Program-made: the position numbers and the translations under genes | Shown here: one piece after another, positions 2,971-32,807 of the stretch | How positions within the stretch are numbered: position 1 is the first letter of the stretch | Layout: the number at the start of each line of letters is the position of its first letter | Assembly (NCBI GenBank): GCA_002269645.1 | Contig: NIVC01004869.1 | Location: 1 to 32,807, forward strand | DNA: 32,807 bases | Origin: Macrostomum lignano | Taxonomy: Eukaryota | Reading direction: 5' to 3' | Notes under the pieces: generated by a model | What the model was told of the DNA's origin: nothing | Database searches by the model: none | The model's input: the letters and a program-made list of their open reading frames with translations, nothing else

Positions 2971-4890
2971 GTCAGGAAAGGAGGAGACGCTGAAGTTAGT
3001 GTCAGGAAAGGAGGAGACGCTGAAGTTAGTGTCAGGAAAGGAGGAGACGCTGAAGTTAGTGTCAGGAAAGGAGGAGACGCTGAAGTTAGTGTCAGGAAAG
3101 GAGGAGACGCTGAAGTTAGTGTCAGGAAAGGAGGAGACGCTGAAGTTAGTGTCAGGTAGAGGCGCTGAAGTTAGTGTCAGGAAAGGAGGAGACGCTGAAG
3201 TTAGTGTCAGGTAGAGGCGCTGAAGTTAGTGTCAGGTAGAGGCGCTGAAGTTTGTGTCAGGTGGAGACGCTGAAGTTTGTGTCAGGTGGAGACGCTGAAG
3301 TTAGTGTCAGGTAGAGACGCTGAAGTTAGTGTCAGGTAGAGGCGCTGAAGTTTGTGTCAGGTAGAGGCGCTGAAGTTTGTGTCAGGTAGAGGCGCTGAAG
3401 TTTGTGTCAGGTAGAGGCGCTGAAGTTTGTGTCAGGTGGAGACGCTGAAGTTTGTGTCAGGTAGAGGCGCTGAAGTTAGTGTCAGGTAGAGGCGCTGAAG
3501 TTAGTGTCAGGTAGAGGCGCTGAAGTTTGTGTCAGGTAGAGACGCTGAAGTTAGTGTCAGGTAGAGGCGCTGAAGTTAGTGTCAGGTAGAGACGCTGAAG
3601 TTAGTGTCAGGTAGAGGCGCTGAAGTTTGTGTCAGGTAGAGGCGCTGAAGTTTGTGTCAGGTAGAGGCGCTGAAGTTTGTGTCAGGTGGAGACGCTGAAG
3701 TTAGTGTCAGGTAGAGGCGCTGAAGTTAGTGTCAGGTAGAGACGCTGAAGTTAGTGTCAGGTAGAGACGCTGAAGTTAGTGTCAGGTAGAGACGCTGAAG
3801 TTAGTGTCAGGTAGAGGCGCTGAAGTTTGTGTCAGGTGGAGACGCTGAAGTTTGTGTCAGGTGGAGACGCTGAAGTTTGTGTCAGGTGGAGACGCTGAAG
3901 TTAGTGTCAGGTAGAGACGCTGAAGTTTGTGTCAGGTAGAGACGCTGAAGTTAGTGTCAGGTAGAGACGCTGAAGTTAGTGTCAGGTAGAGGCGCTGAAG
4001 TTTGTGTCAGGTAGAGGCGCTGAAGTTTGTGTCAGGTTGAGGCGCTGAAGTTTGTGTCAGGTGGAGACGCTGAAGTTTGTGTCAGGTAGAGGCGCTGAAG
4101 TTAGTGTCAGGTAGAGGCGCTGAAGTTAGTGTCAGGTAGAGGCGCTGAAGTTAGTGTCAGGTAGAGACGCTGAAGTTAGTGTCAGGTAGAGGCGCTGAAG
4201 TTAGTGTCAGGTAGAGGCGCTGAAGTTAGTGTCAGGTAGAGACGCTGAATATAGTGTCAGGTAGAGGCGCTGAAGTTTGTGTCAGGTAGAGGCGCTGAAG
4301 TTAGTGTCAGGTAGAGGCGCTGAAGTTTGTGTCAGGTAGAGGCGCTGAAGTTAGTGTCAGGTAGAGGCGCTGAAGTTAGTGTCAGGTAGAGGCGCTGAAG
4401 TTTGTGTCAGGTAGAGGCGCTGAAGTTAGTGTCAGGTAGAGGCGCTGAAGTTTGTGTCAGGTAGAGGCGCTGAAGTTTGTGTCAGGTGGAGACGCTGAAG
4501 TTAGTGTCAGGTAGAGGCGCAGAAGTTAGTGTCAGGTAGAGGCGCTGAAGTTTGTGTCAGGTAGAGGCGCTGAAGTTAGTGTCAGGTAGAGGCGCTGAAG
4601 TTTGTGTCAGGTAGAGGCGCTGAAGTTTGTGTCAGGTGGAGACGCTGAAGTTAGTGTCAGGTAGAGGCGCTGAAGTTAGTGTCAGGTAGAGACGCTGAAG
4701 TTAGTGTCAGGTAGAGACGCTGAAGTTAGTGTCAGGTAGAGACGCTGAAGTTAGTGTCAGGTAGAGGCGCTGAAGTTTGTGTCAGGTGGAGACGCTGAAG
4801 TTAGTGTCAGGTAGAGGCGCTGGAGTTAGTGTCAGGTGGAGACGCTGAAGTTAGTGTCAAGTAGAGGCGCTGGAGTTAGTGTCAGGAAAG
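2971..4890 (+). repeat. 30 bp / 25 bp satellite array
   Basis: Six 30-mers GTCAGGAAAGGAGGAGACGCTGAAGTTAGT (2971-3150), one 25-mer, one 30-mer, then about 67 25-mers GTCAGGT(A/G)GAG(G/A)CGCTGAAGTT(A/T)GT. The array ends in GTCAGGAAAG. Confidence 0.97.
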
Positions 4891-12296: not shown

Positions 12297-15200
12297 CCAG
12301 GCTAGCCTCTTCGTTGATTCGTTGATAAAGCTTTAATAGCTTGACCACTTGTCGCTTCAGTGCGTGATCAGGCACTGCAGAAGTAGCGTCAGTGCAGGTG
12401 TTCCAAATGTTGGTCAATCTGATCATTCCAGTAGGATAGCAATTTGCATTGTGCTCTTTGACTAGCTTCTCGCCCTTCGCAGTAAGTTTGTTAAGAGACC
12501 TGTTTAGCACTTTGTTGAGCTTTTGGCCAGCTGCAGTAGCTGCTTGTCGAATTAGAAACGCACGTTCACATGCTAGCTGCTGCAGCTTACTGAGAACAGC
12601 TTCTTTAGGCATTCTCCTCGTTAGTCCACAAGTGTCATTATCAGCGGAATGCAGCAGCTCCTGCTCCCAAACGCGACAATTGCCGACAAAGGATTCAATA
12701 TCACCTGGTGAAAGTAAAGTAAATAAAGTAGATGCCTACACTAGCCATTATTATCCAGCGTGTGGACATATTTAGTGCTTCAGCTTACATTTTTCTTTGG
12801 ATACGGGACAAAAACAAAAACGAATGCATTTAAACATTTACGACGCAATTAAATATTAAATATTAAATATTAAAAAATAATATATTAAATATTAAATAAT
12901 GCCTTTTTAATTAAAGTAGCTTATCCATAATCATTGCTCACCATTCCCTCCAATGTTTACAATAGCTGACGTAGTAACTCAGTTTTCTTAATGTAGAACA
13001 GCCCTACTAGGCCATTGCAAACATGCAACATATCATCTAGTCCATTCTTTTGGCAGAATGATTGAACTTCAATTGAAAACGCTTCAGGCTTTGCTCCTCT
13101 ACCTTGGTTTGTTGAAAAAGCCAGACACCTATAAACAAATTTAGGAAGAAGTTAAAAAGTTATGATGAAAAAAATGATGAAAATGAACATACGCGAACAA
13201 ATTCATGCATTAAATGAAGGCAGGCAGCTGAAAGAGGCTAACTGGTAAGAAAAGCCTTAGTAATTAAAAACTTTGTCCCTATAAAGAGATTATGATATAG
13301 TTTAGGAAAATGCTGCAAAGTATATGCTTATACTTCATAGAATTTCGGACAACTCACTAATAGTATTAATGACGTTTAGATTGACGGAGCTCACCCAATA
13401 GTTAAGGAATTCGCGCCTGTTGACATGAGTCATTTCCTTCAACTGTGGCCCAAAGCGCGTGACATAGACCAAAGCCATTCACAGCTTTTGCCATCAGTCA
13501 AGCCTACTCCGGATTGGTGTCAAATGCCAAACTTAGTTTGGCAGGCCTCTTTGTGGCCATATGAGTGAAAAGCTAGAATGGCAAAGCTGACTTTGGCATC
13601 ACTGAAGTGACCAGCAAGCTTGCAACCGATGTCATAAGAGACAACAAGCTTCTGGTCTTCTGGATTATCGTCCAGAAGCTTAGAAACCATGGCTTTAGAG
13701 TAGGCAAGCCTGAGAAACAATGAAAAACCAATGCGCACTTTATATTAGTAGTATATACAGAATTTACATGAAATTATTTAAAAAGAACCTTTTCTAGTAA
13801 GAAAAAGATTTTCCAGAATGAAAGGAGAAATAAAAGTAGATGGACATGTCTTTATAGAAGTATGTGTTGCAATCTACCTTTCTCCTTTTGTCACGAGGTC
13901 GGAAAGATAAGAAACAGCAGAGTGCCGGCAGGATCCACAGAATAAGCCAAAAATGTCAAGCTTACTTTCGTCAGATGCAGTCGTAAGGTCTTTTCCACAA
14001 CATCCAGCAGTCCAATTGGGACAATAGGACTTGCTAGGGACTTCTGACATTTGAAAGTCCACATTGACAAAATAGCCAGTGGATGGTGGAAGCACAGCTT
14101 TTCTAGCAAGCCTTCGGTGTCTAAAACCGAAGCAGGCATCCAGCATCTAAAAAACAGGAATGGTTGGATTTCTACTGACAGAGAAGCAGCATAGGACATC
14201 TTCGACTTCAGTAGATGTAGCGGCACAATTAGCGTCATTGCCTAAGCCGCTGCTGTTCGTTTGTGTCTCCTGTATAGAAAGGGCAGGGCACAACCCTTAA
14301 CAGTATGTTTTGTAACTGGTTTAAATATAATTATGAAACATATATATAAATATATTAATTATTATATTTTTCATTATAAAAATATAAGTATGCAGAAAAT
14401 ATAATTGACGAGTAAGATAAAATAATAAAACCTTTACGATGAAGCACGACAGGCATGTTGCTTTAGGGCCCCAGCAATATATATCAAAAGCCGTCAAAAT
14501 GCTTGAAAGCTGCTGGATGTGTTTAACGCATGGAATATGTTGACCTAAAATAGACGATTGTTAGATCACATTTTCTGATTAAGAATAGTCTTTCAAAGTT
14601 TTCGAAAGTATTTCAAACTACAACTGGCAAAAAAAGTAAAAAATAATTAATAAAAAAGCCAGGCACACATAAAACTACAATTTATTATACCTATATACCT
14701 ACTGAGAGCAGGTTGTTAGCTAACTTATCTGATTAATTGTTTAATAAAAGAATTATACTATGATTTGGGAAGCCTATAATTATTAGATATAATAAGAAAT
14801 TGTTCTTGCTTAAATTTTTTACTGTGCTGCCTACCTGAATTGGTGGACGTAGCCATAGAGAATTCTGGCTGTTACTCCAGGCTTCACATAGTGATGACAG
14901 TGACACGGAATAACGTGATGAAATGCTGTCCAGTGTCAGAAGCAGGTTAAAATGATAGCAACGATTCTAGTAACATTAGTGAAAGGTTGCGTCGGCCAGA
15001 ATCCATGCAATAAGAGGTTGGCAAAAATATCAGTACAGGCACACTCCTTGACAGAAAGTGAAATCTTGTCTCCTGGTTTGAAAGCGAGAATATACTTTAA
15101 GTAACTTTACATTACAATTTCATATCAATAAGACACCCAACATCTTTTTCTATTGAAATATTCTTCAAAGAACAGATGGCAGCAGATCCACAAAGACTAC

Positions 15201-15956: not shown

Positions 15957-16315
15957 GGGGGCCGTAGCCCAGCGTAGCGCAGCTGCTCTGGTGTGCCAGC
16001 GGCCCAGGCTCGATTCCAAGTGCAGCCACATTAATTTGGGGCTGAATTGGAATTTCGGCTTGGCTTGCTTGTGCAATTAACAGCCTTGAGAGCCAACCCC
16101 CCAAGGCGCAGTGAAGTGTACATGCCTAACAATTGATAAAGTTAGGGCCGTTGTACACTCCTGTGTGAGTGTGTGCCTGCGTAACCTATCCGCGCTTGTA
16201 TGCCTGCTCAGGGGAGTTGGCGGAATGGGCAGTAATGCCTCTCGCCGGTTGTGTGCCTGTCGCCTAAAGTGCGCCAGGGTGCACACAACCCCCCTGCCTC
16301 TAATCAATAAAAAAA
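15957..16315 (+). mobile_element. tRNA-derived SINE, copy 1, with target-site duplication
   Basis: Head GGGGCCGTAGCCCAGCG (A box) and GGCTCGATTCC (B box), about 270 bp of unique body, AATAAAAAAAA tail. Flanked by ACAGTCCATTTGT(TTGT)AG (15938-15956) and ACGGTCCATTTGTAG (16316-16330). Homologous along its length to 31693-32064. Confidence 0.9.
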
Positions 16316-17245
16316 ACGGTCCATTTGTAGACGACATGTGGTGGATTATGTGAGTGAGCAGAAGTAAGGCATGTTTTGCATATGTTGAGCAAATGGCAGG
16401 CTTTGCAGCGAAAAGTTTCTCCTACTTCCCTGCATGCGCAACATGCAGGAGAAAGACGAGAGTAATAAGAGGCCAATCTAGTCTCAAGTTGGCTTGCTAA
16501 GCTGGACCAGGCTTCTTCCTCTTTTTCTTGAAGGATATCATATCTGCTGGCAGTGCTGGGATCTGATGGATCCAATGCATGGTCAGTAGAGAAGAGATCA
16601 ATACTTTCGATATTTGGGACCAACTCAGTCATAGTAGTGTCACTAACAGTGACACTATGCTGATTGACATGCCTGAAAGCCGGACGCATGCCAACTGTAC
16701 CTTTTAGAAGTTTCATAGCTTCCTTTGCCATCATAAGGATGATATTAATAAGCAATTTTAACCAAAAAACATATTACCTACCTAGACAATTCCTGAGCAG
16801 CAGTAGAACTCAGTCGAATATGCGTGATTTGCCTTCTTGGTCAATGAACCTCGATTTTTTCTTAATTTGAAATTTCTTAGGCATGTTTTTTAATGAATTT
16901 GATCTGAAATTAAAAATTTCAATTTATACTTACTTTTATTGCTCTTACACAATCATTTTAGGCTGATGACAGCCTATGCTATTGCATATGATTAACAAAT
17001 GCTAGAAATCACAATATATAAAAGCTAATACTATGACAGAAGCCTAATCAGTTAGTGGTACAACAATGGAATGAATTGTTGGTGCCTTTTAAAACTCTAA
17101 GAGCAAATATATGTGAGAAATTAATTCATAGGAAATCTAGCCCAGGGTATTTATACTTTACCACTCTTTTGTGCCTGTATGCTATTTGTTAGCCATATAA
17201 AATTTAAATAAAACTGTATATACTCATAGTTCATAAAGAAACATT

Positions 17246-17457
17246 CTAAATAAGAGGCAAGCACATGGGTTCAGAACACCCTTAGATAGACACTCGCCCC
17301 TCTACCACCAAGTTGGATGTTCATGGTGGGCTTTAGCTGTTTAATGTACAACACCTCAAGAGTAGAGACATTGAGAAAGTTTAAAGTTTTGTTACCAATC
17401 TCAGCAGTGAAGTCCATCTAAGGGTGTTCTGACCCCATGCGCTTGCCTCTTATCTAG
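17246..17457. mobile_element. 212-bp MITE-like element
   Basis: About 46-bp TIR CTA(A/G)ATAAGAGGCAAGC(A/G)CATGGG(T/G)TCAGAACACCCTTAGAT(A/G)GAC. The target could be CTAG or TA. Confidence 0.8.
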
Positions 17458-17547
17458 GGCCATCTAACTCAGTTACCCATACTTACAATCTTTTTGGCCT
17501 ATTAGACTTTAAATAATTTACCATCTCTCTGAAAATATATTATTGCC

Positions 17548-17590
17548 TTGCCTGAAGATGCCAATTGTTCGGCGAAACATGTCGCGTGAA
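17548..17590 (+). ncRNA. Minimal type I hammerhead ribozyme motif, Penelope-like pseudo-LTR type
   Basis: TTGC-CTGAAGA-T-GCC-AATTGTTC-GGC-GAAA-C-AT-GTC-GCG. Core CUGANGA at 17552-17558, helix II GCC/GGC, GAAA, palindromic helix III ACATGT, GUC cleavage triplet at 17581-17583, 3-bp helix I. AATAAA follows at about 17599. Confidence 0.65.
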
Positions 17591-19495
17591 GATTGATTAA
17601 TAAATTGTAATTTCGTAATTTCGTATTATCAAAGATAAAATGCAAATGTTCGCCTTTGCTTTCATTTTTCTGACTTTCCTTAAATTTAAAACTAGGGCCT
17701 ACTGACTGCTGTTAAGATTTATTATCATGACAAAAGTATTGTAGTAAGATTCTTTTTTTGTACTATATATAATTTTGGTAACTACAAGTCAATAGTTCAA
17801 AGGAATATAATAACCTATTATTATTACCACACTCTAGATAACTAGTAGCCTTTTTTACAAAGTCTACTCCAGAATTGGAATAAAATCCAATTCCAGAACC
17901 AGATTCGCTAAGAAATGAAAAGCATCAAGTAAATTTTATTTTTAGTCAAAAATTACTTTAAACATTAAAAAATTTTTCCAAGTTACTTATTTTTTACCTT
18001 TAAGTTATATTTGAAGTTAAATTGACTTTAAATATTTTTCATTGTTTCCATAGAAATATGTAAACGAATTGAGAAATTTTGTCAAACCAAATTCTAGAAC
18101 CAAAGTAAGGTTCTGGAACCGATTCTGAAAACGGAATTGGCAAAATGAAAAGTATTGAACCAGTTCTAAAAATGGAATCAGGAATATGAAAAGCCTCTAG
18201 ATCATGTAAAAGCACATTCAGAAATTCAGAAAATAGAATTTCTGAATCCAAAATACTTGGATTTCTAAAATAGTGAGACCTTTTGGATTTCAATTGAATA
18301 TTTGGATCTATCATTAATGCTAATGTGGCAAAGAAGTCTACCCTATGAGTTATCTATGGCCCAAAGGGATGGTGGCCTGCAGCCTGATAGTTACTGAGTG
18401 GGAAGAATAGCAAAAAACATTTTTACTGTTGTAGGGGTTACTTCTGTCTCTAATAATAATTTCACACTGTCACCAAAAGCTATCACAGGGCTAATTTACT
18501 AATCTCTCAAGTGTTCTTCTTAGGTTGGTAGTTGCCACCAAGATTATTCAATTAATAAATTTTTATCAATATTAGAATAATCTGAGAAATGTTTCTTAGA
18601 ATAGGTCTGAGTATAAGTCTTTAAGTATCAGTCTTAGTATAAGTCTAAGGATAAGTCTAGGTATATGTCTAAGGATTAGTCTAAGTATCTACTTTTATTG
18701 GTAGCGTTCTTAGTATATGTATTGGTAGCATTCTTAGTATATGCCGAGTGGTCTACTATTGGCCTGGAATGTATTTCTCAGAATGATCTTCCTTGTAACC
18801 CTTTTGTAGTTAATTAAGTATCTGATTGTCTAGTCCAGTCCTTTAGGCATTCCCGAGATTAGAGGGTCACGGCCTTCTCAATACTGTATATGTATTCCCG
18901 AGATCTACTTTGTTTCACTTCAATCTCCTTGGTATTCTGAGTATCAGTAGTATCTGTGATATGATTAACTTCCACTTCACTCTTTGAATCAAAAAATTTA
19001 CTGTCTTGAAAAGATTTCTAAGTAACAGTTTAAGGCTCAACAAGTAGCGAGACTTGAGACTAATTTAGGAACAGGCAATCAGCCAGTTGGTGGCTCTCTG
19101 GCCAGATCCCGTCTATTTATACTATTTTAAGACTTGATCAATATTAATTTTGATATATGCAGTATTAAAACAAATAGGGCTAAAATTAGTTTTCAGTTTA
19201 AAAATACATACAAATTTTACATGAATATTATTATTAAACGTTAGAAGATTAAAACAAATAATATGTGAATACTATTCTTGAGTGATTAAACTCAAAATTA
19301 TTATTGACAAAATTTATTTACAAAAACTATTATTATTACTATTAGTAGCATTAAGCGCTTGCACATTACTAATCTATTTTTTCTAAGGCAATAAGTATTC
19401 TTATATTTATAAGCATATTTTATTACTGCGACCAAAAATTCAGTTGGATAGTGCCACCAAATGAAGTATTGAATGATCAAACTCCTAATTTTCCA

Positions 19496-21995: not shown

Positions 21996-22928
21996 ATGTC
22001 AAATCGATTTGCAAATAAATGTATCGAAGCGTCTGTCAGAAGATTGTTCACAATAATTTACACTAAAAAACAATTTCAGAATTCGATTTCAAAATCGACT
22101 CGCTCTAGTCGAAGCCGATCGACTTTACGCAACAGCCATGGATTTGTCAGCTTAATTGATTCCGATTCAGATGACGAAGTAGATCCTTCGACACTTGAGC
22201 CGCAGCAAAGAATTGTCACGGTGCGTCCGAAGGCAGAAATTATTGATTTAACAGCAGCAACTGCAGTGCCAGAAGGTTCAGACGATTGCATTGTTATTAG
22301 TGACAATGAAAGCGACAATGACCTTGCCAATAATGCTGATGATGGTGAGGAAGCTGCTAGGAGAACAGCAGATTCCCTAGTTTGGATCGATCTGGACGCT
22401 AACGAACTTGAAAGCGACACAGATGACGATGACGACCTCATTGTAGTAGCGGCGACTCCGCCCGCGACTCGACAGATGAAACCGACATTGCCAGCCAAAC
22501 GGAAACTGCTGTATTGTCAGATTTGTAAATCGAACTTTTCGGATCCAATTCGAACTCATCAAGCATCGATTGCTCATCAGCTGGCTCTGATGCCTGATGA
22601 GGCAGCCGCTCCAGCCTCCGGTTCAGCAGCTGACAGAAAATTGTGCGTAGCCTCTGGTCCAGCTTATCGGATGATGCTTAAACAGGGCTGGACACCCGGC
22701 AGCGGACTGGGTCGACATGGCCAGGGCCGTTCTCAGCCCATAGCAACCGTTGTCAAGCGGGACCGACTCGGTCTGGGCATGGCCGCTCCGAAAAGGAAGA
22801 AAAAGCAGATTCCGCAAAGCAACAATAGTTCTGCCGCCGAGCCTGCAGGCTCCGGTTGCAAAGCTAATTTTGAGCGAGATTTTCGACGATATATGAACGA
22901 CCCAGATTCCACTGCCTGGTTCCAATAA
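21996..22928 (+). CDS. GPANK1: GPANK1-like G-patch protein (zinc-finger-like motif + G-patch + conserved C-terminal helix) without ankyrin repeats; acidic N-terminus
   Basis: 310-aa ORF. YCQICKSNFSDPIRTHQASIAHQL (CxxC...H...H), G-patch GPAYRMMLKQGWTPGSGLGRHGQGRSQPIATVVKRDRLGLG, and C-terminal FERDFRRYMN, all like GPANK1 as recalled (YCxxC..H..STAHL; GFKLLLRGGWEPGMGLG..GEGR..PI.TVLKRDQEGLG; WERDLRTYMN). The 5' end is uncertain (possible acceptor TTTCAG at about 22079). Confidence 0.85.
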   Translation: MSNRFANKCIEASVRRLFTIIYTKKQFQNSISKSTRSSRSRSTLRNSHGFVSLIDSDSDDEVDPSTLEPQQRIVTVRPKAEIIDLTAATAVPEGSDDCIVISDNESDNDLANNADDGEEAARRTADSLVWIDLDANELESDTDDDDDLIVVAATPPATRQMKPTLPAKRKLLYCQICKSNFSDPIRTHQASIAHQLALMPDEAAAPASGSAADRKLCVASGPAYRMMLKQGWTPGSGLGRHGQGRSQPIATVVKRDRLGLGMAAPKRKKKQIPQSNNSSAAEPAGSGCKANFERDFRRYMNDPDSTAWFQ

Positions 22929-23274
22929 TACAATGGTTCAACTACATTAGTCGTTCATTTTTTGCTTGTTATAATGTTATTGTATCTCAATTTTGTGCTA
23001 CAATCCTGTTACGATTGTTTATATGCTGGTTTAATATGTTTCAGTGTAACAAAAATATAAGACAAGAAAATCGTTTTTTATAATTATTAATCAGAATCTT
23101 TTATTAACTTTCTACACAATCTACTTGTTAGTAGTTTTGCATGGATTGTTTATTTAATTTTCTTACTAATCATTTTTCGATACATATCGGTATAGGCTTA
23201 TATTAACTTGTTTTAACAGTAGCGACAGTACAAGTAGGAAAGATTGGGAAACTTCTGTACGGGTCTTCCCGTTG

Positions 23275-24553
23275 CTATGACGACACTCCGCAATCTGCAA
23301 TAACCAGCAGTTTTGTGGGTCTTCCCGACGGGGTGCCCAGGTCTTCGGCTCGTTGCAGCACGTCCCAACCGGATGTTAGCTCGCCAAATACCACGTGACG
23401 ACCGTCCATCCACGGACAGGGGGCCAGCGTGATCAAAAACTGGGAGCTGTTCGTGTCGGGGCCTGAAAGTTGGGGCAGATCGATCGCTTTCGTTTCAGTG
23501 CTTCACGTCTCTTCTCACCCCTGTGTCTCCTATCTCGCTTCTGTGTCTCCCATCTCATCTCTTCCTTGTGTCTCTTATCTCATCACTTCCTTGTGTCTCT
23601 CATCTCATCTTTTCTCTGTGTCTCTTATCTCATCTCTTCCCTGTGTCTCCCATCTCATCTCTTCCCTGTGTCTCCTATCCTCTTCCCTGTGTCTCTTATC
23701 TCATCTCTTCCCTGTGTCTCTCATCTCATTTCTTCCCTGCGTCTCTCATCTAATCTCTTCCCTGTGTGTCTTATCTCATCTTCCCTGTGTCTTCTATCTA
23801 ATCTCTTCCCTGTGTCTCCTATCTCATATCTTCCCACTGTCTCCCATCTCATCTCTTCCCTGTGTCTCTTATCTCATCTTCACCCTGTCTCCCATCTTAT
23901 CTCTTCCCTGCGTCTCATCTTATCTCTTCCCTGCGTCTCTCATCTCATCTCTTCCCTGTGTCTCTCATCTCATCTCTTCCCTGTGTCTCTTATCTTGCCC
24001 CGTGTCTCCTATATTTTCTTACCCCCGTGTCTCCCATCTTATCTCACCCTGTGTCTCCCATCTCATCCCACCCCTATGTCTCGCATCTCACCTCACCTGT
24101 CTCCTCTCTTTTCAACCCCGTCTCCAATCTCATCTCACACCGGTGTCCTCATCTCTTTTCATCCCTGTGACTCCCCTGTCTCTCCCTCTCTTCTCACTCT
24201 TGTGTCTCCAATCTCATCCCACAATGCTCACCGGAGTTGGCCATGCTCAAAAGGCCTCTCCTATCGTGCCTGCCAGTGAGATCCTCATCGGGGAAATACC
24301 TGCCATAGATAGACCAGCCGCCAGTGCCGTTGCCAGACTGGAAGTCGCCAGCTTGTATAGCAAAGCCGGGTATGCACCGGTGGACCCGGCTGCCCCTGTA
24401 GCCCGAACAGCCGTTCTCGTGTCCAACGCAGAGGCTGGCAAAGTTCCGGCAAGTCAGGGGGACTTTCGTAGCGAATAGGCGGAATTCGAGTCGGCCGAGA
24501 GGCACTGAGTTGGCTTCGAGCCTCAGATAGCAGCTGGTTGTGCTGGACTGCAT
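23275..24553 (-). CDS. Single-domain cyclophilin-type peptidyl-prolyl isomerase, 169 aa; exons 24553-24232 and 23462-23275
   Basis: Exon 1 carries [68 protein letters not shown]. Phase-1 intron gtgagc...tttcag. Exon 2 is [62 protein letters not shown]. Confidence 0.95.
23505..24215. repeat. Degenerate approx. 25-bp CT-rich minisatellite in the cyclophilin intron
   Basis: Repeated ATCTCATCTCTTCCCTGTGTCTC(C/T)(C/T). Confidence 0.9.
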
Positions 24554-24705: not shown

Positions 24706-27115
24706 CAGCGTATTTAGCATGCCACAACACGTCTATTTAGCGCAACAACACAGTCTATTTAGCGCCACAACACAGTCTATTCAGCGCCACAACACAGTCT
24801 ATTTAGCGCAACAACACGTCTATTTAGCGCAACAACACAGTCTATTTAGCGCCACAACACAGTCTATTCAGCGCCACAACACAGTCTATTTAGCATGCCA
24901 CAACACAGTCTATTTAGCGCAACAACACAGTCTATTTAGCGCCACAACACAGTCTATTCAGCGCCACAACACAGTCTATTTAGCGCAACAACACGTCTAT
25001 TTAGCGCAACAACACAGTCTATTTAGCGCCACAACACGTCTATTTAGCGCAACAACACAGTCTATTTAGCGCCACAACACAGTCTATTCAGCGCCACAAC
25101 ACAGTCTATTTAGCGCAACAACACGTCTATTTAGCGCAACAACACAGTCTATTTAGCGCCACAACACGTCTATTTAGCGCAACAACACAGTCTATTTAGC
25201 GCCACAACACAGTCTATTTAGCATGCCACAACACAGTCTATTTAGCGCAACAACACAGTCTATTTAGCGCCACAACACGTCTATTTAGCGCAACAACACA
25301 GTCTATTTAGCGCCACAACACAGTCTATTTAGCGCCACAACACGTCTATTTAGCGCCACAACACGTCTATTTAGCGCCACAACACAGTCTATTTAGCGCC
25401 ACAACACAGTCTATTTAGCGCCACAACACGTCTATTTAGCGCCGCAACACGTCTATTTAGCGCAACAACACAGTCTATTTAGCGCCACAACACGTCTATT
25501 TAGCGCAACAACACAGTCTATTCAGCGCCACAACATAGTCTATTTAGCGCAACAACATAGTCTATTTAGCATGCCACAACACGTCTATTTAGCGCCACAA
25601 CACAGTCTATTTAGCGCCACAACACGTCTATTTAGCGCAACAACACAGTCTATTCAGCGCCACAACACAGTCTATTCAGCGCCACAACATAGTCTATTCA
25701 GCGCCACAACACAGTCTATTTAGCATGCCACAACACGTCTATTTAGCGCCACAACACAGTCTATTTAGCGCCACAACACAGTCTATTTAGCGCCACAACA
25801 CAGTCTATTTAGCGCCACAACACAGTCTATTTAGCGCCACAACACAGTCTATTCAGCGCAACAACACAGTCTATTCAGCGCCACAACATAGTCTATTCAG
25901 CGCCACAACACAGTCTATTCAGCGCCACAACACAGTCTATTCAGCGCCACAACATAGTCTATTTAGCGCAACAACACAGTCTATTTAGCGCCACAACACA
26001 GTCTATTCAGCGCCACAACACAGTCTATTTAGCGCAACAACACGTCTATTTAGCGCAACAACACGTCTATTTAGCGCAACAACACAGTCTATTTAGCGCC
26101 ACAACACAGTCTATTCAGCGCCACAACACAGTCTATTTAGCGCAACAACACAGTCTATTTAGCGCCACAACACAGTCTATTCAGCGCCACAACACGTCTA
26201 TTTAGCGCAACAACACAGTCTATTTAGCGCCACAACACAGTCTATTCAGCGCAACAACACAGTCTATTCAGCGCCACAACATAGTCTATTCAGCGCCACA
26301 ACACAGTCTATTCAGCGCCACAACACAGTCTATTCAGCGCCACAACATAGTCTATTTAGCGCAACAACACAGTCTATTTAGCGCCACAACACAGTCTATT
26401 CAGCGCCACAACACAGTCTATTTAGCGCAACAACACGTCTATTTAGCGCAACAACACGTCTATTTAGCGCAACAACACAGTCTATTTAGCGCCACAACAC
26501 AGTCTATTCAGCGCCACAACACAGTCTATTTAGCGCAACAACACAGTCTATTTAGCGCCACAACACAGTCTATTCAGCGCCACAACACGTCTATTTAGCG
26601 CAACAACACAGTCTATTTAGCGCCACAACACGTCTATTTAGCGCAACAACACAGTCTATTCAGCGCCACAACACGTCTATTTAGCGCAACAACACAGTCT
26701 ATTTAGCGCCACAACACAGTCTATTCAGCGCCACAACACAGTCTATTTAGCGCAACAACACAGTCTATTTAGCGCAACAACACAGTCTATTCAGCGCCAC
26801 AACATAGTCTATTTAGCGCAACAACACAGTCTATTTAGCGCCACAACACAGTCTATTCAGCGCCACAACACAGTCTATTTAGCGCAACAACACAGTCTAT
26901 TTAGCGCAACAACACAGTCTATTTAGCGCAACAACACAGTCTATTCAGCGCCACAACACAGTCTATTTAGCGCAACAACACAGTCTATTTAGCGCCACAA
27001 CACAGTCTATTTAGCGCCACAATACAGTCTATTCAGCGCCACAACACAGTCTATTTAGCGACTCAACACAGTCTATTCAGCATCTCAACACAGTCTATTC
27101 AGCGCCACAATACAC
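24706..27115 (+). repeat. 2.4-kb 21/22-bp satellite with higher-order structure
   Basis: About 110 copies of AGCGC(C/A)ACAACA(C/T)(A)GTCTATT(T/C). Degenerate edge units from about 24661. Confidence 0.97.
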
Positions 27116-28532: not shown

Positions 28533-30468
28533 ATGTCTTCAAACTACACAGTGAACTGTCTGTTGGACTCTGTAGCCAAAACCTGCGGCGAAGGTCCCTT
28601 CTGGGAGCCGGTCACCAAAACTCTGTACTTTGTTAGCATCGCTGATGGTGAGGTTCACGTGTGGAGTGAGCCGAATAATTACCACAGCACCATCCAGGTG
28701 AGCGGAGCAGAGACCAGCCCAGCGTAAATTGCCTGGCTCTGCGTCGTTGTGGCGGACGATGTCCCCGAAGGCCTTGCACCAGGGTGTCCATACAGCCCTT
28801 CCTGAGAATATCTATTTCTTATTTTCCAGGTGGGTGAACAGCCTGGCAATTTCGTCAGCTTTGTCATCCCGTGCCAGAGTGGCGGCTTCCTAGCCGGAAT
28901 TAACAAGAGCATCGTGCACTGCGACTGGCAGGCTGGAGAGCTGAAACGTCGAGTGCTGCACGAAGTAGATCCTCAGGAGCCTATTAGGTGACTATTAACA
29001 CTTAGTTTAACTCAGAAACGTAAAATGCACATTCTATGTCCATAAACCAATCAATAAGTGACGAAATCGTTAGCGAATATACGCTTACTATTTTAATCAA
29101 ATTAATGCTCCGATAACGTCATCACAGTGCAGAGTCAAAAACTTCAGTATTTGCTGACGAAACTTCCGCAGGTTCAACGACGCCAAATGCGACCCGGCCG
29201 GACGCCTCCTGGCCGGCACGATGAGCCTGGAAAAAGAGGCTGGCTTAGTGATGAAGCCCGGTGCTGGCAGCCTGTTCGGCCTTGACCTGGACGGCTCCAT
29301 CAAGACGCTGGACACAGGATTCTCCCTTAGTAACGGCTTGGGCTGGCATGGCAACACGTTCTACTTCACCGACTCAGTCGCTCGAGTCATCTACGCCTAC
29401 GACTGGGACGCTGAGGCGTTCAGCATCTCGAATCGGCGAGTTGCCATCGACTTCTCGAAGCTGCCCGAGCAGGAGAAGCTCGGCGTGCCGGACGGTCTGG
29501 CTGTGGACGCAGATGGGCGGCTGTGGGTGGCCTGCTTCTTCGGCTCGCGGGTTCTGTGCCTGGACCCGCAGAGTGGCCAGGTGGTCAGCCAGATCCCCAT
29601 GCCTGTGCCCAACGTGACCTCCTGTTGCTTTGGGTCGGACGGAGAGCTGTTTGTGACCACCGCCAACCACTGGGGTGTGCGCGAGGGAGAGCAACCGCCT
29701 CCGCAGGTGGGTTAATTCGTGTATTTGCGGCTTTTGCGTCCCTTCATGTGTGTTATATTCGACGTGTCTTTCTTGAGGTGTCTATCGAGGTGTGTCATTT
29801 TTTAGTTGTGTCTGTGTCTGTGGAGGAGTGTCTTTGTCGATGAGTCTCTTTGTCGAGGAGTGTCTTTGTCGAGAAGTGTCTTTGTCGAGGAGTGTCTTTG
29901 TCGAGGAGTGTCTTTGTCAAGGAGTGTCTATGGAGGTTTTTTTTGTCGAGGAGTGTCTTTGTGGAGGAGTGTCTATGTCACGGTCACGGTGTCTATCAAG
30001 GAGTGTCTTTGTCACGGTGTCTATCAAGGAGTGTCTTTGTCATGGTGTCTATCAAGGAGTATCTTTGTCGCAGTGTCCATCGAGGAATGTCTATATCGAG
30101 ATGTGTGTTTGCCAAGGCTTGTCTTGTCGAGGAATGTCTTTGTCGAGGTGGATCTGTGTCGAGGAGTGTCTTTGTTACGGTGTATCTTTATCTAGGCGTG
30201 TCTTTGTAGAGGAGTGCCATTCTCTAGGTGTGTCTTTGTGTGTAAAATTAGGATTTAAAGGTTGTCTTAAAGGATTAAAAGGGTTAAACGAAATAATCTG
30301 AAGACACTACTAACTGACAAGTTGAGTACTGGCTGGTCGCATGTCAAACGTGAAGCTCCGCCGTCCCATCCGCAGGCCGGCAGCGTCTTCCGCGTCACCG
30401 GACTGGACCGAATTCGCGGAACGCCCAGCGTGATGTACAAAGGCAGCCTGCCCCTCATCAGCGATTAA
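28533..30468 (+). CDS. RGN: Regucalcin / SMP-30 / gluconolactonase family, copy 1, 316 aa; exons 28533-28697, 28830-28987, 29172-29706, 30376-30468
   Basis: In-frame joins (phases 0, 2, 0) at canonical GT-AG sites. Motifs GEGPFW, RFNDAKCDPAGRLLAGTM, LSNGLGW, FYFTDS, VPDGLAVDADGRLWVA, PNVTSCCFG, LFVTTA, AGSVFRVTGL. The metal ligands equivalent to E18, N103, N154 and D204 are present. Confidence 0.96.
29765..30242 (+). repeat. Degenerate 16-bp minisatellite in regucalcin intron 3
   Basis: Repeated GAGGAGTGTCTTTGTC and variants. Confidence 0.9.
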
Positions 30469-30930: not shown

Positions 30931-31260
30931 GTTTATGTTAGGGTTTAGTTTAGATTAGGTTTTTATGTTCAGGTTAGGTTTTCCATTTAGGTTAGGTTTA
31001 GGTTGGGTTTAGGGTTTAGGTTTATGGTTTAGGTCAGGGTTTAGGGTTAGGGTTTAGGGTTTTGGTTAGAGTTTATAATTTAGGTTGTGGTTTAGGGTTA
31101 GGGTTTAGGGTTTTGGTTAGAGTTTATAATTTAGGTTGTGGTTTAGGGTTAGGGTTTAGGGTTTTGTTTAGAGTTTATAATTTAGGTTGTGGTTTAGGGT
31201 TCAGGTTAGGGTTTATGGTTTATGGTTTAGGTAAGTTAGGGTTTATGGTTTAGGTTTAGG
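30931..31260 (+). repeat. Interstitial telomere-like TTAGGG/TTTAGGG tract with a 51-bp higher-order unit
   Basis: GGTTTAGGGTTAGGGTTTAGGGTTTTGGTTAGAGTTTATAATTTAGGTTGT three times at 31038-31190, within degenerate TTAGG(G) repeats. Confidence 0.9.
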
Positions 31261-31692: not shown

Positions 31693-32064
31693 TGTTTTTT
31701 ATTTTTATTAGAGGCAAGGGCAGTGTGCACCTGGCGCACTTCAAGCGACATTGTCGCACAACCGGCGAGAGGCATTACTGCCATTCGCCGACTCCCCTGA
31801 GCAGGCACACAAGCGCGCCAATACGAACGCAGTCATACGCACAGGCACACACTCACACAGGAGTGTACAGCGGCCCTGACTTTATTTATCGTTAGGCATG
31901 TCCACTTCACTGTGCCTTGGGGGTTGGCCCTCAAGGCCGTTAACTGCACGAGCAGAGCCAAGCCGAGATTCCAATTTAGCCCCAAATGAATGTGACTGCA
32001 CTTGGAATCAAGCCTGGGCCGCTGGCACATCAAAACGCCGCGCCAGACCACTTGGCTACAGCCT
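31693..32064 (-). mobile_element. tRNA-derived SINE, copy 2
   Basis: The reverse strand starts GGCTGTAGCCAAGTGG (A box), then GGCTTGATTCC (B box). The body matches 15957-16315 and ends in AATAAAAATAAAAAA. Confidence 0.9.
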
Positions 32065-32488: not shown

Positions 32489-32807
32489 ATGCCTTCAAAC
32501 TACACAGTAAACTGTTTGTTGGACTCTGTAGCCAAAACCGTAGGCGAAGGTCCCTTCTGGGAGCCCGTCACCAAGACTCTGTACTTTGTTAGCGCCTTTG
32601 ACGGCGCAGTTCACCTGTGGAGTGAGCCGAATAATTACCACAGCACCATCCAGGTGACCGAAAAGCAGGGCAGCTGTGTCAGCTTCGTCATCCCCTGTCA
32701 GAGTGGTGGTTTCCTAGCTGGCATCAACAACACCATCGTGCACTGCGACTGGCAGGCTGGAGAGCTGAAACGTCGAGTGCTGCGCGAAGTAGATCCTCAG
32801 GAGCCAA
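32489..32807 (+). CDS. RGN: Regucalcin / SMP-30 paralog, copy 2, 5' part (runs off the window); lacks intron 1
   Basis: MPSNYTVNCLLDSVAKTVGEGPFWEPVTKTLYFVSAFDGAVHLWSEPNNYHSTIQVTEKQGSCVSFVIPCQSGGFLAGINNTIVHCDWQAGELKRRVLREVDPQEP reads uninterrupted. It has 14 differences from copy 1 in 106 aa by hand count. Confidence 0.93.
   Translation, partial: MPSNYTVNCLLDSVAKTVGEGPFWEPVTKTLYFVSAFDGAVHLWSEPNNYHSTIQVTEKQGSCVSFVIPCQSGGFLAGINNTIVHCDWQAGELKRRVLREVDPQEP

Follow-up and report, generated by a model that had tools for sequence, protein, structure and literature searches.

A 132-nt intron confined to one of three tandem regucalcin genes of Macrostomum lignano: a candidate recent gain at a CAG/GTG site

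The sequence analysed here (hereafter the window) is a stretch of 32,807 nt from the flatworm Macrostomum lignano, taken from the forward strand of contig NIVC01004869.1 (assembly GCA_002269645.1). Towards its 3' end we identified the beginning of an array of three head-to-tail regucalcin genes with homologous flanks (copies 1, 2 and 3, or c1, c2 and c3). Copy 1 and the 5' part of copy 2 lie inside the window. The last 11 kb of the window correspond, at 99.87% identity, to contig NIVC01003182.1 of the same assembly (L001), which extends the window in the 3' direction, and the rest of copy 2 and all of copy 3 were read on this contig. Two more contigs of the assembly (L010 and L011) each carry the same three-gene array. 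The first intron of copy 1 (intron 1) is missing from copies 2 and 3, and its origin is the subject of this analysis.

Copy 1 is encoded on the forward strand by exons spanning positions 28533–28697, 28830–28987, 29172–29706 and 30376–30468, the last of which includes the stop codon. Every intron has GT-AG ends and the spliced product is 316 amino acids long. Exon 1, defined by the open reading frame and the splice model, comprises 55 codons and ends in ...ACC ATC CAG. Intron 1, placed by the splice model at 28698–28829 (forward strand, 132 nt, GT-AG, phase 0), separates Q55 from V56, and exon 2 starts with GTG GGT GAA CAG CCT GGC, corresponding to the hypervariable loop VGEQPGNF. Intron 2 (28988–29171, 184 nt, phase 2) is found in all three copies and not in outgroups; intron 3 (29707–30375, 669 nt, phase 0) is likewise common to all three copies and contains a minisatellite. 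The copy 1 protein matches Pfam family PF08450 (SGL; SMP-30/gluconolactonase/LRE) with E=7e-65 over residues 18–273 and profile positions 1–246 of 246, and so presents the full-length six-bladed SGL propeller expected of the SMP-30/gluconolactonase/LRE (regucalcin) family. The best named relatives are animal regucalcin and regucalcin-like proteins at ~40% identity, and the closest named proteins are M. lignano hypothetical proteins.

Intron 1 has the features of a U2-type spliceosomal intron, namely GT...AG ends, a polypyrimidine tract and a conserved frame that is restored on its removal. With the intron spliced out, the product aligns gap-free to both other copies and to P0001, a 78%-identical transcript of a relative (SRR28338163-7) with a synonymous divergence (dS) of ~1.0 to the copies. 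Deposited gene models P0002, P0124 and P0126 also remove the intron and join TIQ to VGEQPG, although a sequence identical to the whole 316-residue product is absent from the collection searched. If it were retained, the reading frame would stop after nine codons. The ratio of nonsynonymous to synonymous divergence between copies 1 and 2 is ~0.18, which indicates that copy 1 is under purifying selection; taken together with the early stop, this means that intron 1 must be spliced.

The donor of intron 1 reads CAG/GTGAGC (the slash marks the splice junction) and the acceptor ...TTTTCCAG/GTG, a context also written CTATTTCTTATTTTCCAG/G. Both junctions fall within copies of an 8-nt direct repeat, TCCAG/GTG (TCCAGGTG), with five nucleotides to the left of the junction and three to its right. 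The upstream copy (28693–28700, forward strand) carries the donor GT, and the downstream copy (28825–28832, forward strand) carries the acceptor AG. The body between the repeats, which is the putative inserted DNA, is 124 nt long (28701–28824, forward strand). The intron is 55% guanine plus cytosine (GC); its first 100 nt reach 63%, and its last 32 nt, which form a pyrimidine/AT-rich tail, have 31%. The corresponding values are 35% and 45% for introns 2 and 3 of copy 1, 50–63% for the exons and 41% for the whole window. The initial annotation of this DNA had pointed to a 132-nt intron at IQ/VG, to 8-bp direct repeats at its junctions and to its unusual GC richness, and our analysis confirmed all three. 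We also identified a 13-nt inverted repeat (12 of 13 positions complementary) between the intron at 28726–28738 and exon 2 at 28840–28852, which has a near-palindromic core and could pair in the pre-mRNA; this match is not significant against shuffled sequences (p about 0.07).

Copies 2 and 3 are without intron 1 only. In copy 2, a fused exon 1+2 on the forward strand starts with the ATG at 32489 and runs to the window edge at 32807, reading ...TIQVTEKQGSC... gap-free over the intron-less junction 32653/32654, with a residue number equal to that of copy 1. The full copy 2 model occupies positions 13979–14301, 14367–14901 and 15785–15877 of L001, its two introns measuring 65 and 883 nt. Copy 3, which encodes 313 amino acids, occupies positions 16423–16736, 17336–17870 and 18397–18489, with introns of 599 and 526 nt. 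These introns sit at the positions of introns 2 and 3 in copy 1. The junction in copies 2 and 3 holds a single copy of the 8-mer each, that of copy 3 with one substitution, and copy 3 has a 9-nt deletion in the loop directly after the intron 1 site. In L010 and L011, too, intron 1 with both of its 8-nt repeats occurs in copy 1 and not in copies 2 and 3; the intron of copy 1 is 100% identical in L001 and 96% identical in L010 and L011. As the loci on these two contigs are ~3–5% diverged from the window, the recurrence of the pattern indicates that the intron 1 difference is fixed and older than the split of those loci. Relative to the window, their copy 1 coding sequence differs by ~1.4%, intron 1 by 3.8% (four substitutions and one indel, all within the first 78 nt) and intron 2 of copy 1 by 2.7%.

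The gap-free read-through of copy 2 and the difference at five of the seven residues 57–63 between copies 1 and 2 had both been described in the initial annotation, and both hold. Its figure of 40 identical nt before the site was close to the measured 38 nt of exon plus GTGA, that is, 42 nt. This identical run (28660–28701 against 32616–32657) ends ~4 nt beyond the junction, after which the copies diverge strongly; it has the appearance of a gene-conversion tract halted by the heterology of the intron.

Loss of the intron from copy 2 by way of reverse-transcribed mRNA, either as a retrocopy or through recombination with complementary DNA (cDNA), would account for the exactness of the difference. 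The initial annotation had placed intron 2 just past the window edge and had suggested extending the window across it. Intron 2 of copy 2 does begin 4 nt beyond the edge, and the extension shows that copy 2 keeps both this intron and intron 3, as does copy 3, which refutes an origin of copy 2 as an intron-free copy of an mRNA. The copies are also arranged head to tail in the genome, and their flanks are homologous. Furthermore, cDNA-mediated loss typically affects 3' introns or neighbouring ones, whereas the sole intron missing here is the 5'-most. We regard the cDNA route as hardly credible.

The initial annotation had also proposed that intron 1 arose by tandem duplication of an exon segment containing AG/GT. 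Introns are said to have been formed by segmental or tandem duplication of such AGGT-containing exon segments, reportedly in the model of Rogers from 1989 and in Hellsten et al of 2011 (Nat Commun). Intron 1 resembles introns of this kind in carrying AG/GT at both ends, inside the 8-nt direct repeat, and differs from them in that its interior shows no detectable similarity to the exons. We compared the intron, on both strands and by local alignment against dinucleotide shuffles, with exon 1, exon 2, the two exons joined, copies 2 and 3, and the whole coding sequence. The 132-nt intron aligned no better than shuffles to the flanking exons, to copies 2 and 3 or to the coding sequence (p=0.07–0.9), and there was no excess of 7–10-mers shared with the flanks within 150–600 nt. 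Given a dS of 0.25 between copies 1 and 2 (0.25–0.31 for the copies), an exon-derived intron younger than their split should have kept ~80% identity, which was not seen. The shuffle test suggested together with the proposal thus went against it, and tandem exon duplication was rejected as the source of the intron body; that intron 1 is a diverged tandem duplicate of a 132-nt exon segment is very improbable.

What similarity there is to coding sequence lies at the 5' end of the intron. In a junction-anchored gapped alignment, the intron start GTGAGCGGAGCAG matches the copy 3 coding sequence GTGAGC-GAGCAG at 12 of 13 positions (p=0.015; 0.017 as the best of four comparators). A likeness to copy 2 at the same point had been noted in the initial annotation. 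An ungapped match of 13/21 does exist, with p=0.009 at fixed length and 0.027 when length is scanned, but its significance is lost when it is treated as the best of four comparators (p=0.089) or when a gapped anchored alignment is used (p=0.08). Against exon 2 of copy 1 itself, the anchored alignment gave p=0.46. The resemblance to paralog coding sequence appears weak and nominal, and the original duplication may at most have been slightly longer than 8 nt. A single repair event that copied copy 2 into copy 1, producing both the 38-nt exon tract and the intron start, was rejected because the two parts differ in age, with 0/38 differences in the exon tract against 8/21 in the intron start. A patchwork of short flank-templated insertions in the style of polymerase theta was rejected for lack of any 7–10-mer excess; the best individual match was the inverted one of 12/13 nt to exon 2 described above.

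The 124-nt body was searched further. Using blastn, only self-matches were found in the window, L001, L010 and L011, and its ends carry no terminal inverted repeats. When its six-frame open segments were concatenated, with stop-bounded pieces dropped, no match at E<=10 was found among 5.8 billion proteins, and the idea that the body had been captured from a coding gene or a transposon open reading frame was rejected on the strength of that concatenated query. Intron 1 has no Rfam match at E<=1 and a fold z-score of -1.2, which is not unusually stable, so that a role as host of a small RNA or structured element was also discarded. Judged by these comparisons, the body is foreign to the gene, and only the junction repeat could be a duplication.

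Taken together, we put a probability of roughly 0.5 on intron 1 being a young, copy-1-specific insertion of unrelated GC-rich DNA at a CAG/GTG site, accompanied by an 8-bp target duplication. Both the direction of the change, a gain, and the mechanism of insertion are what we infer here. The insertion would have taken place after the tandem copies arose and before the second, ~3–5% diverged locus separated. The DNA that entered the coding sequence of copy 1, at an existing CAG/GTG proto-splice site and with duplication of 8 bp (TCCAGGTG), would have been unrelated and GC-rich, ~124 nt in length and rich in pyrimidines towards its 3' end. The intron 1 site is CAG/GT or AAG/GT in all homologues, including the transcript of the relative at dS ~1, and this conservation makes it a ready proto-splice site. 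Because the duplicated 8-mer contains AG/GT, its upstream copy would provide the donor GT and its downstream copy the acceptor AG, while the insert would contribute AGC, turning the donor into GTGAGC, and the polypyrimidine tract. Splicing would then take out exactly 132 nt and the original frame would be regained.

The likely route would be a staggered double-strand break that was mended with filler DNA or, alternatively, a transposon-like insertion. In Daphnia pulex, neointrons have been attributed to staggered double-strand break repair (PMC4202315; also PMC3020277) and carry repeats of 4–12 bp (PMC4202315), a description that fits the 8-nt junction repeat of intron 1. Like the Daphnia neointrons, intron 1 is a short intron of unrelated sequence within a coding exon whose excision restores the frame exactly; unlike them, it has no notable internal direct repeats. 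The Daphnia cases were polarised by population polymorphism and close outgroups, whereas the M. lignano intron is fixed in three assembled loci and was compared between paralogs, not alleles.

The direction of the change was assessed first from the copies themselves. Two of the three lack intron 1, including the copy nearest to copy 1 by distance. The dS values are 0.25 for c1-c2, 0.31 for c1-c3 and 0.315 for c2-c3, and unique changes number 30 in c1, 37 in c2 and 66 in c3; these distances and counts favour the grouping ((c1,c2),c3). Informative sites in exon 1 support c1+c2 by 6:0:1. With this grouping, a loss of intron 1 needs two events, or one loss plus gene conversion. In addition, the exon-like 63% GC over the first 100 nt suggests that the sequence has had too little time to decay to non-coding composition, at which an old intron would be expected.

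Comparison with distant orthologs is also consistent with a gain. Exon boundaries were mapped exactly in Owenia, Ostrea and Lingula and approximately in Lineus, Diadema and Etheostoma. An intron in phase 0 between the positions of Q55 and V56 is found in 0/6 of these orthologs, the outcome of a comparison that the initial annotation had put forward as a check. The Owenia, Ostrea and Lingula genes have four introns in common, all in phase 1, and Macrostomum introns 1–3 (phases 0, 2 and 0) sit at positions that this annelid, mollusc and brachiopod do not use. As no intron position is shared with the three fully mapped outgroups, the introns of this gene have undergone complete turnover.

Several observations weigh against a recent gain. 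The first concern the relationships of the copies. Across the whole coding sequence the informative sites split 14:9:14, and the non-coding regions give conflicting groupings: the 5' end of intron 3 (first 60 nt) groups c2+c3, at 83% identity against ~60% to c1, the 3' end of intron 2 groups c1+c3, and the 3' flank groups c1+c2. The copies evidently have a mosaic, gene-converted history in which the array exchanges sequence, and such exchange makes the counting of events on a tree unreliable and tree parsimony weak. For these reasons the gene tree, despite distances that favour ((c1,c2),c3), was dropped as a guide to gain or loss. Secondly, the junction repeat is less telling than it appears. 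Its 8 nt exceed the junction microhomology of 12 introns in the orthologs of Owenia, Ostrea and Lingula (0–6 nt, mean 3). However, intron 3 has a junction repeat of its own, TCCGCAG/G, which is 8 nt long in copies 1 and 2 and 7 nt in copy 3 and which in copy 1 lies at 29700–29707 and 30369–30376; that of intron 2 is 4–5 nt. Of the lineage-specific introns of this gene, two out of three thus carry unusually long junction repeats, and the 8-nt repeat is unusual yet not specific to intron 1. Since intron 3 is shared by the copies, and hence older, an equal repeat there means that the repeat is no mark of youth here. Thirdly, neither the window, L001, L010 and L011 nor the protein search yielded a source for the inserted DNA, and the outgroup genomes compared are distant ones.

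The same evidence can be read in the opposite direction. Intron 1 may have been present in the single gene before duplication, and microhomology-mediated end joining of its two flanking TCCAGGTG repeats may then have removed it precisely from copies 2 and 3, either once in a common ancestor of c2 and c3 or once with subsequent spread by gene conversion within the array. Small introns with junction microhomology are reported to be prone to precise genomic loss in Caenorhabditis and Drosophila (PMC3698931). Intron 1, with 8 nt of junction microhomology and the shortest length of the three introns in copy 1, has this profile, is precisely missing from copies that keep their other introns, and in those copies has left the single 8-mer that such a deletion would leave. 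The similarity of c2 and c3 at the start of intron 3 fits their being sisters or partners in exchange there, so that one loss could be enough, and the older, shared intron 3 has the same kind of junction repeat. The Caenorhabditis and Drosophila model requires an ancestral intron, however, and here the synonymous distances and the exon 1 sites lean towards c1 and c2 as sisters, which would call for two losses or conversion. The 8-nt repeat itself suits duplication at the birth of an intron and microhomology-promoted deletion equally well.

The ancestral intron required by this alternative could be an older gain in the Macrostomum lineage, like introns 2 and 3, or an ancient bilaterian intron with shifted splice sites. 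The latter finds some support in the outgroups. In all six, the codon that corresponds to G57 is interrupted by an ancient phase-1 intron, just 4 nt downstream of the intron 1 position, and in the nemertean, echinoderm and fish orthologs, too, the junction of exons 1 and 2 falls at this first ancient intron. It is exactly in the loop containing this codon that Macrostomum carries an insertion of four residues. Counted from conserved anchors, Macrostomum exon 1 falls 4 nt short of the outgroup length and exon 2 exceeds it by 16 nt (net +4 amino acids), as would fit a double splice-site shift. Against this, a change from phase 1 to phase 0 is required, which is rare, and the other three ancient introns have all gone from the gene, so that retention is not the default. 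The loop is also prone to indels, its length differing in copy 3 and in the more distant relatives P0003 and P0004. On these alignments, intron 1 as a retained ancient intron with both splice sites shifted would be possible but not likely. For loss as a whole, in either version, we see a substantial probability that falls somewhat short of even odds, and gain is modestly favoured.

Within the favoured reading of a recent gain, the inserted DNA could belong to an introner-like mobile element present in many copies, one whose insertion duplicates 8 bp of target and whose splice sites both come from the duplicated AG/GT. Introners are known to produce target site duplications of 3–9 bp that can donate both splice sites (PMC9860276, PMC12130899). 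Intron 1 is similar in that its 8-bp duplication holds both splice dinucleotides, while the insert gives the remaining splice signals, a donor-compatible AGC and a strong polypyrimidine tract. In length it falls inside the range given for introners, some families of which are known to draw both splice sites from their target (PMC9860276). Another mobile repeat, of ~330 nt, is active at this locus, where it has brought intron 2 of copy 3 to 599 nt; it is unrelated to intron 1. Unlike introners, intron 1 lacks terminal inverted repeats, and a search of the window, L001, L010 and L011 gave no further copy of it; the window with L010 and L011 amounts to ~80 kb of M. lignano DNA. It left no translated trace among the 5.8 billion proteins, and its fold is not unusually stable. 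Introners are generally reported to be less GC-rich than exons, whereas intron 1 matches the exons in GC. Our literature search found no report of introners in Macrostomum or flatworms and no paper on intron gain in Macrostomum, and the word "flatworm" is absent from the main introner survey (PMC9860276). We consider membership in such a family decidedly unlikely.

Other features of the region were recorded alongside the array. The ~330-nt repeat is interspersed; its copies, 84–92% identical to one another, lie between regucalcin copies 1 and 2 (31733–32060, reverse strand), elsewhere in the window (15985–16275, forward strand) and within intron 2 of copy 3 (L001 16760–17090). The spacer between copies 1 and 2 also contains, at 31005–31260, a telomere-like GGGTTTA/GGGTTAG array in 51-nt higher-order units. 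The region is rich in minisatellites, with big arrays at 1486–2427, 2984–4886, 23508–24175 and 24711–27114 (units of 24, 25, 25 and 22 nt; <=110 copies), and these arrays cause strong GC-skew swings in the composition profile. The minisatellite of intron 3 in copy 1 (29819–30239) has a 16-nt unit, TGTCGAGGAGTGTCTT, and intron 3 of copies 2 and 3 holds a different one of ~17 nt, TTGTTGAGCTTGTGTCT (L001 15040–15700 and 17970–18370). Upstream of the regucalcin array lies a single-exon gene for a G-patch domain protein (about 22108–22929, forward strand), which has the same position in L010 and L011. No transfer RNA gene was called in the window by ARAGORN. With regard to the deposited annotation, models P0123, P0127 and P0128 wrongly merge all three copies, and P0128 also takes in the upstream G-patch gene. 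The copy 1 model P0002 (L001 10001–11100) leaves the frame inside exon 3 (…DTGLTAWAGMATRST…), in contrast to the open 316-residue model, and this frame break is probably an annotation error.

Introns that differ between very recent gene copies and still show a legible junction footprint are rare, and they are the main material for the study of intron birth and loss. The array described here allows a clean three-way comparison, in which copies at dS 0.25–0.31 have the same splice-site context and one of them carries a 132-nt intron with an 8-bp junction repeat. M. lignano is a laboratory flatworm open to transgenesis (PMC8717057). In either direction, intron 1 belongs to a class of event that is already known, and the array is a candidate locus, not a new phenomenon. 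If the loss is true, it would be a textbook case of microhomology-mediated precise deletion. If the gain is true, intron 1 would document a neointron of break-repair or transposon type in an animal other than Daphnia and the tunicates. A broader reading, which we consider unlikely, is that intron gain is currently active in M. lignano, through insertions that duplicate ~8 bp of AG/GT target, possibly by an introner-like family so far unreported in flatworms. In that case, intron 1 would be a recent insertion between tandem paralogs and the junction repeat of intron 3 an older footprint of the same process.

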